A DNA stretch of 63,905 nucleotides, counting the filler, from Octopus bimaculoides (Eukaryota): assembly GCF_001194135.2 (NCBI RefSeq). It is 6 parts of 4 records of this genome, joined end to end, with 100 filler letters (N's around TTAATTAATTAA, not from the genome) between each part and the next. Parts side by side here need not be neighbours in the genome. Positions count along the whole stretch, not along the records: positions 1 to 29,777 come from NC_068985.1; 5 more parts are not named here. One strand, 5' to 3'. The first letter of the stretch is position 1. Every line of letters starts with the position of its first letter. The notes under the pieces are model-generated. The model made no database searches and was not told where the DNA came from. It saw only the letters and a program-made list of their open reading frames with translations. Below are positions 5,207-23,662 of the stretch, piece by piece. The translations under genes and the position numbers were made by a program.

Positions 5207-7234
5207 AGATGAGTTCTTAATATTAACTAAATTAGGGTGGTGGCTGTGGTGGTGGAATTGGCAGAATCATCAGAACATCAAATAAAGTGCCATGCCATAT
5301 TTAATTACAGTTTTTTTGTTTTGTTTTGTTTTTTCATTCTAAGTTTAAATCCTGTCCAGGTTAACTTTTCTGGGGTGGATAAAATAAAGTAGCATTTAGT
5401 TATTGGAGCTGATTTCCTCTGATGCATCTTGGATAGAAATAGAATTATAATAAATGAAGAAATCAAGGTGGATGGATGGAAGACAAAATCAAATCTCTGT
5501 CGAATTTTGGGAAAGAGGAAGGTCTAAAACCAAACTTGTCAAGATCTAATCTCAGAAAGTAAATCTATGGAATCAACCTTTTTCATTATTGTCACCTTTC
5601 TATATCATTCAATCAGCATGCATTTGGTGAGAGTCAAAACAATGACTTGCATATTTAGTGTTAATAAACTCCAGCAGATTGAAAGGTAGATTTGCTAATC
5701 ATTGGAGGACAACTTCTTTCAGACGAATGTTCATCATAACAAGCTCATTTCGTTGGAATAAGAAGATCTTGGTACAGAAATGTGAAGAGACAGACAACAA
5801 GGTTAAGCATCTGTTTTGACCCTGTTGTGTGTCTCCTCAGCCAAAGCTTCTTCAAGGTCAATGAATCTAACAAGAGTTTTGGTCCAGGCACTGGTGTCTC
5901 AAAGTCTCTTTATGTCAATGAATCAATGTATTATGAATTCACATTTGTCTCCAATACAACAGCAATTAGCATAAACACATCTAAATTTGCTGGAATCTGC
6001 TGAGAAGAAAAATGTGTTGTCGTTTATATGTTATGTTGTGACAGATGTATTGTAACTTCCAGAAGCTGTATAGTGTGAAATGAGAATAATCATAAAGAGT
6101 GGATCAAAGTAACTATAAAGAATAAAATAACACTTGTTGCTTAGCTTCTGATCAGCCAGGAGTGAACAGACCTATCACTGAAACTATTCCAGCCATGACA
6201 ATCCAGTTTATCATTCAATCAATGTTTGTTCTTTCTTTAATCATGGTAGTGTGTGATTTGAGGGAGATTTTGTTATTATTTCTCCTATGTCAAGCTTCCT
6301 GGCTCAATAAATACCATTAATATGCTGAGGTTAATTTAATTAAGTACATCACCTATCAAATAACAATTGGTCTTTCCGCTTGGGCAAAAATCAATATGTT
6401 ACGAAATCTTAATTCAAAATAAATCAATAACAATCATATACTCCACTATCACTACTACTGCTAATTACTAATCCTGCGACTAATGATAATAATGATAATT
6501 CAGTTCTACAAGACAATAAAAAGAAAATGGATCTCTGTTTCAATGATGAATTTTCCAGATGTTTGATCAAAATGAACAACTATAAGTGGTTGAGTATTTC
6601 ATAGACACAGTGTGTGGTTAACCTTTTGAATTACCAGTACAATCCATGCAATAGACTACCACATATTATCAGTCTCCCCAAATTCATTTACAAGGCTTGG
6701 CTTAGCACCTGGCTATGGTAGAAGACATCCAAGATAAATGCTGTGGGGTTGAACCTGAAAACTCATGACTGTAAAGTGAATTACTTACCCATTTGGCCAT
6801 TGCTGTCATCAAATCCTTACTACTATATAACATAAGTGAAAGATGAACCGGTATTTAGTTCTTCTACTTGCTAAGAATAACAGCTAAATTCCATAACTCA
6901 GAAAGGATATCTAATGGGCAGGTGATAAGCTCTTTAGTGCTGGTTACCTGAAAATGGTGTTGCAATTTAAACACTGATGAACCTTATAACACACACATCA
7001 CACAGGAAAATAAATACTTATTTTAGTTATTCTTGAAAAGATAGACTTTGTGACTGATTGCACCAGGGTTGTAACAAGAGGTGTACCTACTTGTAACAAG
7101 AGGTGTACCTTCTGTGCTATTTAGGTCTAAGCATTTTAGTCATAAATGGTTAAATGGCATCAAATTATGCTAAACCAAGGAATATCTGAGGCACTGAATA
7201 TATTGATCACTTCTTGGGAATTCAGTCATCTTTT

Positions 7235-15712: not shown

Positions 15713-16186
15713 CCTTCGTCTGTGTTTCCATTTTTTCCTTCAGTTACAGAAAGATGTGAACTTAGTTTGTAAGGTAATTTATACACACACACACACTCAC
15801 ACACTTGTATGCATACACACACATGCATGCACACATGCATGCACGCATGCATGCACGCACACACATTCCTTCATTAGCATATACATACAGAAACACTGAT
15901 CCTTCACTATACGCACTTAATGGACAGATTTGTTGTGAGCAGTAACTGTTTGCTGAGTGTGATAAGAGCTGCTGATAAGATGAGACATTGTTAATCTGTT
16001 ATGAAGTGGAATGGGCTCTGCTAAGTTTTAAAAAAGTCCTAATTCATGATTTACATCACAACAGCGTTCTTACTTCTCCAAATCAGAGGTTGAGGACCCA
16101 AGGCCAGACAGGATTATAGCTTTTCAGATTAGTTAGACTCTTCATGTGTCAATGACCAAAAGTGGATAAGAAATGTTCTTATGCTT

Positions 16187-16618
16187 GTACATCATTTACA
16201 TTATTTACATTTGATGGATATTTGCCCTCTTGCTTGTTGTTAACACAATGTTTCGACTGATATACCCTCCAGCCTTCATCAGTTGTCTTGGAGAAATTTC
16301 GAACCTGGGTTCTCATTTCTAAGGTATGCCCGTGAGCATATGGCATAGTGGTTAAGAGCGCGGGCTACTAACCCCAAGATTCTGAGTTCGATTCCAGGCA
16401 GTGACCTGAATAATAATAATAACAATAATAATAATCATAATAACATCGAAAAATACCTTAGGAATGAAAACCAAGGTTTGAAATTTCCCCAAGACACCTG
16501 ATGAAGACTGGAGGGCATATCAGCTGAAACGTTGTGTTAACAACAAACAATATGAGGACAAATATCCGTAAAAATGTAAATAATGTACATAATTCCTCAT
16601 CTCTTAAATATAGAACTA
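16187..16618 (+). mobile_element. tRNA-headed SINE with Penelope-type hammerhead 3' segment and 5' inverted copy of that segment
   Basis: TSD TTCTTATGCTT at 16176-16186 and 16619-16629. Inverted arms at 16187-16327 and 16453-16588. A box TGGCATAGTGG at 16341-16351, B box GAGTTCGATTCC at 16384-16395, (TAA)n linker, and a 3' tail of about 30 nt. Confidence 0.8.
16493..16538 (+). ncRNA. Minimal type I hammerhead-ribozyme-like motif
   Basis: GACAC-CTGATGA-[AGACTG gagggcatat CAGCT]-GAAA-CG-T-T-GTGTT. Stem I is GACAC/GTGTT and stem III is the palindrome AACGTT. A degenerate second copy lies on the minus strand at 16242-16287. Confidence 0.65.
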
Positions 16619-18115
16619 TTCTTATGCTTAGTTTACAAATAAAAGGAACATAGCTTGAATCTAGGATTGATAGGTTAACTTTTGCTTATATAATCCATTT
16701 ATGGTTTGGTTTCTATGTCTGGATTCCTCCAGAAATGGAAGGTCCAAAAGAGATCAGTCACAGAGGACAATGACTGAATAAAACTAGCTCAAACTTGTTG
16801 AATCTTCTTAACCACAACATATTTCAAATAGATGTTTAATCAATTTGTTATATTTTTACCAAGAGATACAACTTTTGTTTCTGATTATTTTGAAAATCAT
16901 GAAGAATTCAGTAAAATCACTGTGTCATTGTGAAGTTTTATGTGAGGAACTTGAAAAAAAAAAGGTTTTTATGGAAGATTTTGATTTAGATAACTTTAGA
17001 ATAAAGTTTGTATCAAAGATCCACAGCAACCCCAGGTGCGTTGATATCAAAAGGGTTCATAGGTAAGCTGGTTCACACATTCATTCAATGCAACACATTG
17101 AAAATCTCTGAAGGATCATTGTTTTTGTATATATGTTTTTGTTTTGTCTATGTTCAATATTTTAGTAAAGATTATAAAAGTTATGTTGAAATATAGGTTT
17201 TTCACAGATATTTTCAAATAAATGATGTCTGTCAGACATTTATAACTTTTGCTCACGCACACAAAACAGAGAATAATAATTATGTACAGATACGTATGAA
17301 TAATATTTATTTGATGCAGTAGTGTAACAGCTGTTGTAGTCATTGCAGCATTCTGAGTTCAAAACTCATTCAGGTCTACTCTGGCTTTTGTCCTTCTGGG
17401 GTCAATAAAATATTCATTAAGCTGGTGGATTGGCAGAAAAGTTTGAGTTGTTTTGTGTTATTTGTTGTGCTCACTGCATTCTGAATTCAAATCCTGCTAA
17501 TATCTTGGTCTACTCACAAAATAAACTCAGTCTTTTTTGGCAGAAGACTTGACCTGTCACCCAGTTTTATGCTGCTACTTGGCCCTTGTGTTTCTTTAGT
17601 GGATTCCCCCCCCCCCNNNNNNNNNNCCACACTGTTACAAATATTTGCTGTTAGGGATCCAGTTTGAGAATACCCTCCTTTCTTTCTCTCACTAAACTAA
17701 AAACAACGAAAAAAGAAAGTAAAAAAATACTCAAGAAAATCATCATCATCAATTAATGTCCATTTCCTATGCTGGCTAAGCTGGATGGCCCTAGCAGGAG
17801 CTGGCAAAGCCAAGGGGCCACAATAAAGCAAGATTGTCACAACTGAAGGGATTATGATCATGTGTGCTCAGTCACAGCTGACCTTGGCCTGAACAACAAC
17901 TGGGTTTGCTGTGACTCAACCATTGAGTCAGCCTAAGATACTACATTTTATACTTAACCAAAAGTACTTGACACATTTTGTACTTAACCCTTTGAGATCT
18001 GCTGTTTATTTCAATTGAACAATGTTTGTAATGATAAACAGGAGTGGTCATCATAACCTTCTGAATCTGTCAGAAGACTGGAAAATTGAGATGGGATAGG
18101 TTATGTAAGAACTGC

Positions 18116-22969: not shown

Positions 22970-23662
22970 ATCTCTCTCAATCTCTCTCTCTCTTTTCCTC
23001 TCAATCTCTCTCTCTCTTTTCCTCTCAATCTCTCTCTCTCTCTTTACCTCTCAATCTNNNNNNNNNNNNNNNNNNNNNNNNNNNNNNNNNNNNNNNNNNN
23101 NNNNNNNNNNNNNNNNNNNNNNNNNNNNNNNNNNNNNNNNNNNNNNNNNNNNNNNNNNNNNNNNNNNNNNNNNNNNNNNNNNNNNNNNNNNNNNNNNNNN
23201 NNNNNNNNNNNNNNNNNNNNNNNNNNNNNNNNNNNNNNNNNNNNNNNNNNNNNNNNNNNNNNNNNNNNNNNNNNNNNNNNNNNNNNNNNNNNNNNNNNNN
23301 NNNNNNNNNNNNNNNNNNNNNNNNNNNNNNNNNNNNNAATCTCTCTCTCTCTTTTCCTCTCAATCTCTCTCTCTCTTTTCCTCTCAATCTCTCTCTCTCA
23401 ATCTCTCTCTCTCAATCTCTCTCTCTCTTTTCCTCTCAATCTCTCTCTCTTTACCTCTCAATCCCTCTCTTTCTCTTTTCCTCTCAATATCTCTCTCTCT
23501 CTTTTCCTCTCAATCTCTCTCTCTCTTTTCCTCTCAATCTCTCTCTCTCTCTTTACCTCTCAATCTCTCTCTCTCTCTCTCTCTTTACCTTTCAATCTCT
23601 CTCTCTCTTTTCCTCTCAATCTCTCTCTCTCTCTCTTTACCTCTCAATCCCTCTCTTTCTCT
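22970..23662. repeat. CT-rich minisatellite (about 18-22-bp unit ctctcaatctctctctcttttc)
   Basis: Repeated unit visible on both sides of an N gap. Confidence 0.9.

Follow-up and report, generated by a model that had tools for sequence, protein, structure and literature searches.

The insertion described here comprises 443 bases of Octopus bimaculoides DNA and is one copy of a multi-copy short mobile element. It lies in a stretch of 63,905 nucleotides, referred to here as the window. Along the window, its parts are the following.

16176..16186, no strand: left copy of the target-site duplication, 11 bp, TTCTTATGCTT, an exact direct repeat with 16619-16629
16187..16327, minus strand: inverted copy of the 3' module, 5'-truncated, which begins at the inner 3' end without the tail and stops at ATACC
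16242..16287, minus strand: degenerate minimal hammerhead of the inverted arm, from descriptor comparison
16328..16408, plus strand: tRNA-like head, presumed internal Pol III promoter, from its A and B boxes and its homology to loci L012 and L006
16409..16445, plus strand: (TAA)n or A-rich linker joining the head to the 3' module (Tandem Repeats Finder: (AAT)n at 16409-16443)
16446..16588, plus strand: direct Penelope-type 3' module, to the inner 3' end, with homologous copies at eight other loci
16493..16538, plus strand: intact minimal type-I hammerhead of the direct arm, a descriptor match
16589..16618, plus strand: 30-nt tail, ATAATTCCTCATCTCTTAAATATAGAACTA, the stretch from the inner to the outer 3' end, here on the right side only
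16619..16629, no strand: right copy of the target-site duplication, 11 bp, an exact match to 16176-16186

The 11-bp duplication, the inverted arm, the head with A and B boxes, the (TAA)n and the direct arm of the original prediction are all confirmed at these coordinates. The whole head-linker-module unit measures about 290 nt. Its 3' module, of about 145 nt or about 175 nt with the tail, resembles the terminal region of a Penelope-like element (PLE): a minimal type-I hammerhead is followed by a 9-nt repeat, AATGTAAAT, in one to four copies, and by two alternative 3' ends. The ATG of the module is found in GGAATGAGAACC. The two arms (16187/16191-16327 and 16453-16588/16593) are inverted repeats with 85% identity over approximately 137-141 nt (E=1e-40). 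Identity to the family consensus amounts to 93.5% for the inverted arm and 93.1% for the direct module; such values, about 93% to the consensus for either arm and 85% between the arms, are as expected if both were made in one event.

The head contains an A box (TGGCATAGTGG, 16341-16351, no mismatches) and a B box (AGTTCGATTCC, 16385-16395, one mismatch), the starts of which are 44 nt apart, as in tRNA genes. Both boxes are recognisable, with CpG decay, in the two heads of L012, which are 85-88% identical to the window head (E=1e-17), and the 5' end of the head, CCG..GCATATGGC, recurs in L006. Full-length copies (window, L006 and L017) share a 5' start that precedes the A box by between a few and 13 nt. 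ARAGORN called no tRNA in the window or in seven loci, and the Rfam tRNA model gave no match to the head at E<=10; the likeness of the head to tRNA D- and T-arm sequences was judged by reading only. That the sense strand has no TTTT is compatible with chance (P about 0.2-0.46) and was dropped as evidence for Pol III. As judged from its sequence features, the element may be transcribed by Pol III. Alternatively, the head could be a passenger. The element would then be a derivative of a PLE or retrozyme, non-autonomous and dependent on Pol II or read-through for its transcription, and not a true SINE. The failure of the tRNA models and the uninformative TTTT count would agree with such a derivative, as would the occurrence of the module in headless tandem arrays in another genome (L005) and the known non-autonomous PLE derivatives without Pol III heads (PMC8557442). 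Still, the A and B boxes are well kept at tRNA spacing, the full-length copies have a common start, and three different tRNA-like heads precede the module (the window family, L017, and L009/L018 of a second assembly), as expected if a promoter is needed. A passenger head is therefore considered unlikely.

Other copies were retrieved in an exhaustive phmmer search with the read-through translation of the element (ORF cut-off E<=0.001). The search yielded 15 ORFs: 14 derive from other copies, and the remaining one, P0005, is a tandem-repeat protein without relation to the family and was set aside. P0001 could be traced to no contig. On the contigs of the matching ORFs, eight further independent family loci were found, which probably stem from a related genome, together with three loci of a second assembly. 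Among the sources of the contigs are ENA assembly ERZ21867824 and runs SRR11869384-94. Nine loci, mostly on contigs of 1-2 kb, were inspected in total. Word-indexed protein searches with the frame of the antisense arm and with that of the antisense head-linker-arm gave no match, and the exact DNA pattern of the hammerhead region had no matches in metagenome, viral or prokaryote-genome contigs.

As the loci were chosen via ORFs of the module, presence of the head was not a selection criterion. Head and module travel together in this short, non-coding, dispersed family. In L012, the head is joined through a short (TAA)n to the module in the inverted copy and again in the direct copy, the contig of L011 begins within the 3' end of the head (CAGGCTGCGACCTGAATAA) and continues via (TAA)n into the module, and L006 is a deletion derivative in which the 5' end of the head is kept and followed by an A-rich linker. 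The flanks differ each time between the copies in the window, L012 (two), L011 and L006. In L017, a different tRNA-like head is joined by an A10 linker to the same module; hence, two different heads use one module. A microsatellite lies directly 5' of the module in L008 and L010. Overall, a linker of variable length occupies the same site in L008, L010, L011, L012 and L006 (A10 in L017), and the junction ..CCTGAATAA..(TAA)n..CAT.AAAAATACCTTAGG recurs at independent loci with differing linker lengths. The proposed linkage of head and arm thus extends beyond the window locus.

These copies bear on two alternative explanations. A LINE-driven tRNA-SINE with a (TAA)n tail could by chance have landed at a later time in the middle of the palindrome formed by a truncated inverted-repeat PLE. 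BLAST within the window revealed no second copy of the head, arm or tail, the head followed directly by (TAA)n resembles a complete simple SINE, palindrome centres are fragile, and the arms of L001 and L003 abut without a head, all of which would suit such nesting. Conversely, no private duplication of at least 6 bp was found around the head-(TAA)n segment, and the combination of head, linker and module is found twice in L012 and also in L011 and L006, with the other head in L017. The inverted copy of L012 includes the head, an arrangement that a later central insertion cannot yield, and the differences in flanks and break points between loci argue against segmental duplicates of a single nested locus. 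The linkage in both copies of L012 refutes chance nesting, to which we assign a very low probability. The second explanation is a one-off chimera of the U6-L1 kind: in the course of a single PLE insertion, the reverse transcriptase, on reaching the 5' end of a PLE-fragment RNA, would have switched to a SINE RNA, and no family would have arisen. PLEs are known to take host sequences with them (PMC8557442), and the head is complete, extending from a plausible Pol III start as far as its (TAA)n. Recurrence of the same junction at independent loci with different linker lengths and the joining of a second head to the same module leave very little probability for a chimera of this kind.

In textbook terms, SINEs borrow the tails of LINEs and hence LINE enzymes; a tRNA-headed SINE family with the insertion scars of PLEs would add a third retroelement class as SINE driver. 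In the present family, insertions are marked by inverted 5' copies and alternative tails, and the duplications vary in length. An inverted, 5'-truncated copy adjoins the direct copy at five of the seven loci with a visible 5' side (window, L001, L003, L006 and L012), in line with the PLE-style 5' inversion originally predicted. The 3' terminus is common to both arms. Truncation is variable, no two loci sharing the inner break point of the inverted arm; in L017 the inverted arm is absent. The 3' ends of the copies are located either at ...AATAATGTAC (inner) or 30 nt beyond (outer). The resulting tail is found in the direct arm of the window, in both arms of L001, in the direct arm of L003, in the inverted arm of L006 and in ORF P0001, and the remaining copies stop at the inner 3' end without it. 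A tail restricted to the 3' end, as described in the original prediction, is accordingly a property of the window copy and not of the family, where either end or both can be extended. The duplications measure 11 bp in the window and 9-10 bp in L006, with a weak match of 6-7 bp in L017; a clear target-site duplication was not seen at L001 or L003. The direct repeat in the window is extendable to 18 nt with two mismatches. A duplication of 18 nt was rejected because the extra AGAACTA is family tail sequence, also present in P0001, L001 and L003 and diverged in L006, and the duplication in the window is therefore 11 bp.

PLE insertions have been described as heavily truncated on the 5' side, accompanied by a neighbouring inverted copy and bearing a tail of 30-40 bp at either end (PMC8557442). 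In vitro, a PLE protein was found to cut and extend both strands, starting internally at two sites that mark the limits of the tail (PMC11167929), and pairs of minimal hammerheads lie on opposite strands, 100-700 bp apart, in Schistosoma (PMC4209133). Since head-to-head insertion is typical of Penelope-like elements, it is probably the Penelope rather than the usual LINE machinery that was borrowed. Two further explanations must be weighed against these signatures. In the first, the SINE would be mobilised by a LINE, the module representing the 3' end of a stringent-type LINE (CR1, L2, RTE or Dong-R4) and the arms arising via twin priming. The 9-nt repeat, in one to four copies at the inner end, is reminiscent of the 3' microsatellite tails of LINEs, Dong-R4, RTE and CR1 are abundant in octopus (PMC13282606), and a PLE partner was not found (see below). 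In twin priming, however, the inverted segment lies upstream and the 3' terminus remains single, whereas here it is carried by both arms; two ends 30 nt apart with tails on either side are PLE signatures, and the module holds a PLE-type minimal hammerhead with covariation. LINE mobilisation is accordingly rather improbable. In the second, the element would be a miniature inverted-repeat DNA transposon, e.g. a Mutator-like one with duplications of 9-11 bp, and the arms would be its 140-bp terminal inverted repeats. Long inverted arms and an 11-bp duplication would be expected for such an element, but the right end has 30 nt that are missing from the left, the break points of the inverted arm differ per locus, L017 has no inverted arm, and the duplication lengths vary. 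The probability of a DNA transposon is close to nil. As originally proposed, the anatomy of the arm points to a PLE and not to a LINE end or a terminal inverted repeat, in view of its shared 3' terminus, its two 3' ends, its variable truncation and its minimal hammerhead.

In summary, positions 16187-16618 are likely to be one retrotransposition product of a multi-copy SINE family that combines a tRNA-type head with a PLE-type module and is supplied with PLE enzymes in trans. The interpretation as a PLE-mobilised SINE is supported. In the cycle we propose, the unit would be transcribed by Pol III from the tRNA-like head, and the reverse transcriptase/GIY-YIG endonuclease of a PLE, acting in trans, would recognise the 3' module and cut the target strands 11 bp apart. 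Reverse transcription would then start from both nicks at internal sites on the SINE RNA. The bottom-strand cDNA would have started at the outer site, giving the tail, and run to the 5' end of the RNA at 16328, 13 nt upstream of the A box. The top-strand cDNA would have started at the inner site, giving no tail, and stopped after 141 nt. Head-to-head joining of the two cDNAs would leave the inverted arm beside a full copy. By this route the SINE would make use of PLE enzymes, and the hammerhead might play a role as well.

The hammerhead of the direct arm (16493-16538) reads GACAC / CUGAUGA / A / GACUGG-loop-UCAGCU / GAAA / CG / U / U / GUGUU, with a predicted cut after T16533. It is the sole descriptor match in the window, and no match was obtained in 400 dinucleotide shuffles. 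The descriptor was built on published features of minimal hammerheads, namely 4-5 bp in helix I, a base left unpaired after A9, a G10.1-C11.1 pair and a palindromic 15.2/16.2 (PMC4209133). Both boxes, CUGANGA and GAAA, are present in the segment, together with H at position 17, an open-ended type I helix I of 4-5 bp, the unpaired base 9/10.1, the G10.1-C11.1 position and the palindromic 15.2-16.2, present as CG; helix III is absent. The extra A after position 9 is found in 12 of 12 aligned copies and the G10.1-C11.1 pair in the consensus and in 8 of 12 copies, with G-U in the direct arm of the window. The family consensus is a perfect hammerhead motif. A hammerhead had been predicted for both arms. 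The CTGATGA...GAAA boxes do occur in both (plus strand at 16498, minus strand at 16282), but only the direct-arm hammerhead is intact: its inverted counterpart retains CTGATGA, GAAA and all six pairs of helix II, whereas its 2.1-1.1 pair is broken (C>A) and its CG palindrome disrupted (16.2 G>A).

The lowest-energy fold of the 46-mer monomer is the hammerhead fold, and the lowest-energy predicted dimer fold differs from the expected extended helix III and is uninformative. In an alignment of 12 sequences, two rows of which are partly misaligned, the helices are paired in 83% of cells, versus 19-46% in slid controls. Four pairs changed on both sides, and the observed covariation score was reached by none of 500 shuffles, albeit for this small sample of 12 sequences. 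Compensatory changes in helix II include 10.3/11.3 in L011 (C-G to U-A) and 10.4/11.4 in the second assembly (U-A to C-G). No match to the Rfam hammerhead models was obtained in spans of 29.8 kb, 801 nt, 98 nt and 71 nt searched at the gathering threshold and at E<=10 (on 71-801 nt even at E<=10), as expected if the models require helix III. On the structural model, the ribozyme might cleave the SINE RNA, and processing of the 3' region by the ribozyme was part of the original prediction. This part finds no support: cleavage would sever the promoter head from the starting region of reverse transcription, and the predicted cleavage site does not coincide with the beginning of any of the four truncated inverted copies. 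The monomeric minimal hammerhead of the window element should be inactive alone. We suspect that the hammerhead is probably retained as part of an RNA handle inherited from a PLE and not as an active processing step of the SINE.

The phmmer search revealed no long protein with a reverse transcriptase that shares the open frame of the module, and an autonomous PLE whose terminal repeat or ORF start matches the arm was not found in the protein and contig collections searched. No reading frame for a reverse transcriptase or GIY-YIG endonuclease occurs anywhere near the window element. Two candidate partners were rejected. The reverse-transcriptase ORFs near the array of L005 are LINE-like by eye, and the reverse-transcriptase ORF of L018 combines Exo_endo_phos (AP-endonuclease) with RVT_1, as in LINEs, and not GIY-YIG. 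In the second assembly, another tRNA-like head is followed by two to three tandem ribozyme units (L009/L018). Tandem 126-nt units are present in L005, L009 and L018, the array of L005 being headless. The same module in tandem ribozyme arrays behind another head links SINEs, retrozymes and PLE terminal repeats in evolution. The window holds one direct unit and an inverted partial copy without a tandem, and therefore falls outside the retrozymes by the tandem criterion.

The pLTRs of endonuclease-bearing PLEs have, like the window element, a type-I minimal hammerhead without helix III and with an extra base after A9, a G10.1-C11.1 pair and a palindromic CG at 15.2/16.2; helix II measures 6 bp in the window element versus the 7-8 bp reported in Schistosoma (PMC4209133). 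The inverted 5'-truncated copy beside a direct copy and the optional 30-nt tail are likewise shared with PLEs (PMC8557442, PMC11167929), as are variable duplications at AT-rich targets, whereas in the window element a tRNA-like head and a microsatellite linker replace the element body. Chlamys elements such as Chlamydomonas MRC1 are also non-autonomous and have only the 3' end in common with autonomous PLEs, with pseudo-LTRs and head-to-tail insertions. In contrast to the window element, they belong to a green-algal clade and have neither a Pol III head nor a canonical hammerhead (PMC8557442). Non-LTR retrozymes of metazoans, too, lack autonomy, bear a hammerhead and are proposed to be PLE-dependent (PMC7229834; 10.64898/2026.07.22.740005). 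They are headless tandem repeats of 170-400 bp giving circular RNAs, unlike the dispersed single unit with head in the window; the tandem 126-nt units described above look like retrozyme arrays.

A description of such a SINE family with another partner was not found in the literature searched. The original prediction knew of no account of such a SINE class; this needs correction insofar as the Sm-alpha/Sj-alpha elements of schistosomes pair a Pol III promoter with a hammerhead, according to the summary in PMC6765202. They are the only described precedent for this combination. As summarised in PMC6765202 and PMC8490949 (originals: Ferbeyre 1998, Laha 2000), these are likewise short non-coding retroposons with a Pol III-type promoter and a hammerhead. 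Unlike the window element, Sm-alpha has a type I hammerhead capable of cis or trans cleavage in vitro and is mostly arranged in tandem, with the promoter at the RNA's 3' end after cleavage. PLE-style inverted copies or tails are not reported in these summaries, and the sequence is unrelated to the window family. Sm-alpha elements and animal retrozymes are thus partial precedents.

There is an even chance that the family belongs to a SINE class as yet unrecognised, present in cephalopods and possibly in further molluscs, which parasitises PLEs instead of LINEs and in which several unrelated tRNA-derived heads captured the same PLE module. If so, the module would consist of a minimal hammerhead and a mimic of the partner's repeat-ORF junction, two start sites for reverse transcription included, and would represent the minimal RNA handle in nature that suffices for insertion driven by a PLE. 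With its compact size, it may offer a natural minimal substrate for the poorly understood integration of PLEs, for which cutting of both strands and internal starts of reverse transcription have been observed in vitro with one lizard element only (PMC11167929). Such elements would also account for part of the large unclassified SINE load in octopus genomes. In Octopus vulgaris, SINEs constitute 11.6% of the genome, and 893 of the 900 SINE families among the recently active families are unclassified (PMC13282606). Head-to-head copies with optional tails are easily mistaken for MITEs or nested insertions in annotation. The octopus tRNA-SINEs OK, OR1 and OR2 and CORE-SINEs share with the window element a short length and a tRNA-derived head with A and B boxes, and reach high copy numbers in octopods (PMC4824008, PMC4758252). 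They carry a CORE domain and LINE-type tails, whereas the window element has the PLE-type module and no CORE evident by eye. An ordinary, different SINE lies at approximately 6640-6810 of the window.

The element at 16176-16629 has the anatomy of the original prediction, which had described a tRNA-like SINE with a hammerhead-bearing 3' piece (hereafter the module) present as inverted and direct arms. Its parts are:

16176-16186 and 16619-16629, duplication TTCTTATGCTT
16187-16327, inverted arm, between the duplication copies
16341-16351, A box of the tRNA-like head, 0 mismatches
16385-16395, B box of the head, 1 mismatch
16409-16443, (AAT)n tract
16453-16588, direct arm, between the duplication copies
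16589-16618, 30-nt tail, present on the right side only
16191-16212 and 16568-16588, 9-nt repeat AATGTAAAT

The arms are 85% identical to each other over ~140 nt (E=1e-40) and each is ~93% identical to the family consensus, which fits a single insertion event producing both. The two boxes are spaced 44 nt apart. ARAGORN called no tRNA in the window, and Rfam returned neither a tRNA nor a hammerhead there, even when short stretches were searched at E<=10; its silence on the hammerhead is expected for a motif without helix III. No second copy of any part of the element was found within the window.

DNA pattern scans of three contig collections (metagenome, viral and prokaryote-genome) gave 0 matches, and a word-indexed protein search produced no further copies. 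An exhaustive phmmer search, whose query was a read-through translation of the element's minus strand, yielded 15 short ORFs, 14 of which are other arm copies translated in sense or antisense; the remaining one (P0005) is unrelated and was discarded. Ten of 11 ORFs looked up could be followed to their contigs, the exception being P0001. This provided eight independent loci of the window family, from sequencing runs SRR11869384-94, and three more on long contigs in ENA assembly ERZ21867824. All were chosen via ORFs in the module and not via the head.

At every locus with visible, untruncated sequence upstream of the linker, a tRNA-like head was found. Locus L012 holds two copies, one inverted and one direct, and in both a head (85-88% identical to that of the window) is joined to the module by a 9-nt (TAA)n. 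L011 opens at its contig end within the head, whose last 13 nt lead through a 45-nt (TAA)n to the module. The first visible sequence is (AAT)n in L008 and a trinucleotide repeat in L010. L006, flanked by a 9-10 bp duplication (ATAAATAGT), shows in order an inverted arm with tail, the head 5' end (CCGAAGGGCATATGGC, versus CCCGTGAGCATATGGC in the window), a head with an internal deletion, a long A-rich stretch and a direct module. The direct copies of L001 and L003 are each cut off inside the module and adjoin the inverted arm. A nested insertion and a one-off chimera, either of which would have joined head and module by chance, are both refuted by the recurrence of this junction in other loci. 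In L017 (229-540) the window-family module is preceded by a tRNA-like head distinct from the window's (TTAGCAGTGGCT ... GAGTTCAGTCTC) and an A10 linker; this locus lacks an inverted arm and terminates at the inner 3' end. Heads thus seem to have been swapped onto one mobilisation module.

By the signature that Craig et al. list, insertions of Penelope-like elements (PLEs) are heavily truncated at the 5' end, lie next to an inverted copy that is likewise 5'-truncated, bear a tail of 30-40 bp at either end and have hammerheads in their terminal repeats (PMC8557442). In the work of Frangieh et al., both strands of the DNA were cut and extended by a purified PLE protein, which began reverse transcription at two internal RNA sites; the tail is the stretch between them (PMC11167929). 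In Schistosoma, minimal hammerheads occur as opposite-strand pairs a few hundred bases apart (PMC4209133). The window element fits this signature and the two-start-site reaction point by point: one cDNA would run from the outer site as far as the 5' end of the RNA, a second would start at the inner site and stop early, and the two would be joined head to head. Twin priming by a LINE could be considered as the source of the inverted arm, but should not leave two copies of the 3' terminus; symmetric ends would be needed for a DNA transposon. Together with the recurrence of head and module, the PLE-type signature supports the central proposal of a PLE-mobilised tRNA-SINE. Judging from the A and B boxes and from the 5' terminus that copies share upstream of the A box, the element is presumably transcribed by Pol III. 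We infer that it uses the machinery of a PLE partner; no autonomous element of this kind was found in the contig and protein collections searched.

The family alignment shows two copy termini, either near ...AATAATGTAC or 30 nt beyond at ...TATAGAAC(TA), and the tail is found on direct arms, inverted arms or both. Directly before the inner 3' end, the 9-nt repeat is present in 1 to 4 units per copy (alignment columns 290-320), with one unit more in the inverted than in the direct arm of the window. The module consensus has a sense frame that starts at an ATG (GGAATGAGAACC) and meets no stop codon before the 3' end (window 16464-16618), as is also the case in nine of the ORF matches. From this ATG, the inner and outer ends lie ~125 and ~155 nt away, resembling the 111-118 nt at which reverse transcription starts inside the ORF of a lizard PLE (PMC11167929). 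The module may thus mimic the ORF start, or repeat-ORF junction, of its partner, which we regard as a lead rather than a result.

The minimal PLE hammerhead as defined by Cervera and de la Peña has type I topology, a helix I of 4-5 bp and no helix III, with an unpaired base between A9 and 10.1, a G10.1-C11.1 pair and palindromic positions 15.2/16.2 (PMC4209133). Run over both strands of the window, a descriptor built from such features matched only the direct arm (GACAC-CUGAUGA-A-GACUGG-AGGGCAUA-UCAGCU-GAAA-CG-U-U-GUGUU), and gave 0 matches in 400 dinucleotide shuffles (~23 Mb in total). The hammerhead is the lowest-energy predicted fold of the 46-mer, and a perfect minimal motif is present in the module consensus; the copy in the inverted arm has lost two descriptor features. 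In the 12 copies compared, 83% of helix cells pair, versus 19-46% when the partners are slid, and helix II shows compensatory changes from C-G to U-A in L011 and from U-A to C-G in the ERZ21867824 assembly. Nothing suggests that the hammerhead cuts the SINE RNA: a cut would leave the promoter head and the start sites on separate RNAs, no truncated family copy begins at the predicted cleavage site, and minimal hammerheads require a second copy for action (PMC4209133).

Non-autonomous PLE derivatives are known as animal retrozymes (PMC7229834; 2026 preprint 10.64898/2026.07.22.740005) and as MRC1 of Chlamydomonas (PMC8557442), and the SINE-like Sm-alpha/Sj-alpha elements of schistosomes combine a Pol III promoter with a hammerhead (PMC6765202). 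Among the publications compared, which include a recent detailed octopus repeat annotation, no description of a tRNA-headed SINE with PLE insertion signatures was found.

In the ERZ21867824 assembly, L009 and L018 share ~210 nt consisting of another tRNA-like head (B box GGTTCAATCCT) and body, followed by 2-3 tandem 126-nt units that are 72-78% identical to the window module. Pol III-type heads combined with PLE-type ribozyme units thus occur beyond one family and one species. The arrays, each of 2-3 tandem 126-nt units and resembling a retrozyme or pseudo-LTR array, and nearby ORFs are:

L005 3021-3400, sense on minus strand, tandem hammerhead-module units
L009 5772-5980, sense on minus strand, tandem hammerhead-module units
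L018 10000-10400, sense on minus strand, tandem hammerhead-module units
L018 11776-15252, minus strand, LINE-type reverse-transcriptase ORF
L005 4017-6528, LINE-type reverse-transcriptase ORF

The L005 and L009 units fit the descriptor once a helix I of 3 bp is allowed (CUGAAGA-A-GGCCGG...UCGGCC-GAAA-CG-UU); those of L018 appear decayed by eye. The reverse-transcriptase ORFs lie within a few kb of the arrays, that of L018 having Exo_endo_phos and RVT_1 domains and those of L005 looking LINE-like by eye. As no GIY-YIG domain was seen in them, they were rejected as PLE partners. A further tRNA-like SINE (GGTGTAATGGTTAAAGCG ... GAGTTCAAACTCC; L009 5560-5745, minus strand) directly follows the hammerhead array and may be an insertion target or a component of a composite.

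The whole piece at window positions 1-29777 is AT-rich (about 65%), with several N runs and dense (TG)n, (TA)n and (TAA)n microsatellites. It has no convincing protein-coding ORF, nor does any Rfam family reach the gathering threshold there. Two further features were recorded:

22974-23660, 24-nt CT-rich repeat
6640-6810, minus strand, old copy of another tRNA-like SINE, ordinary in appearance (A box 6789-6799, B box 6745-6755, 44 nt apart)

The body of the latter SINE after its boxes is unrelated to the hammerhead module.
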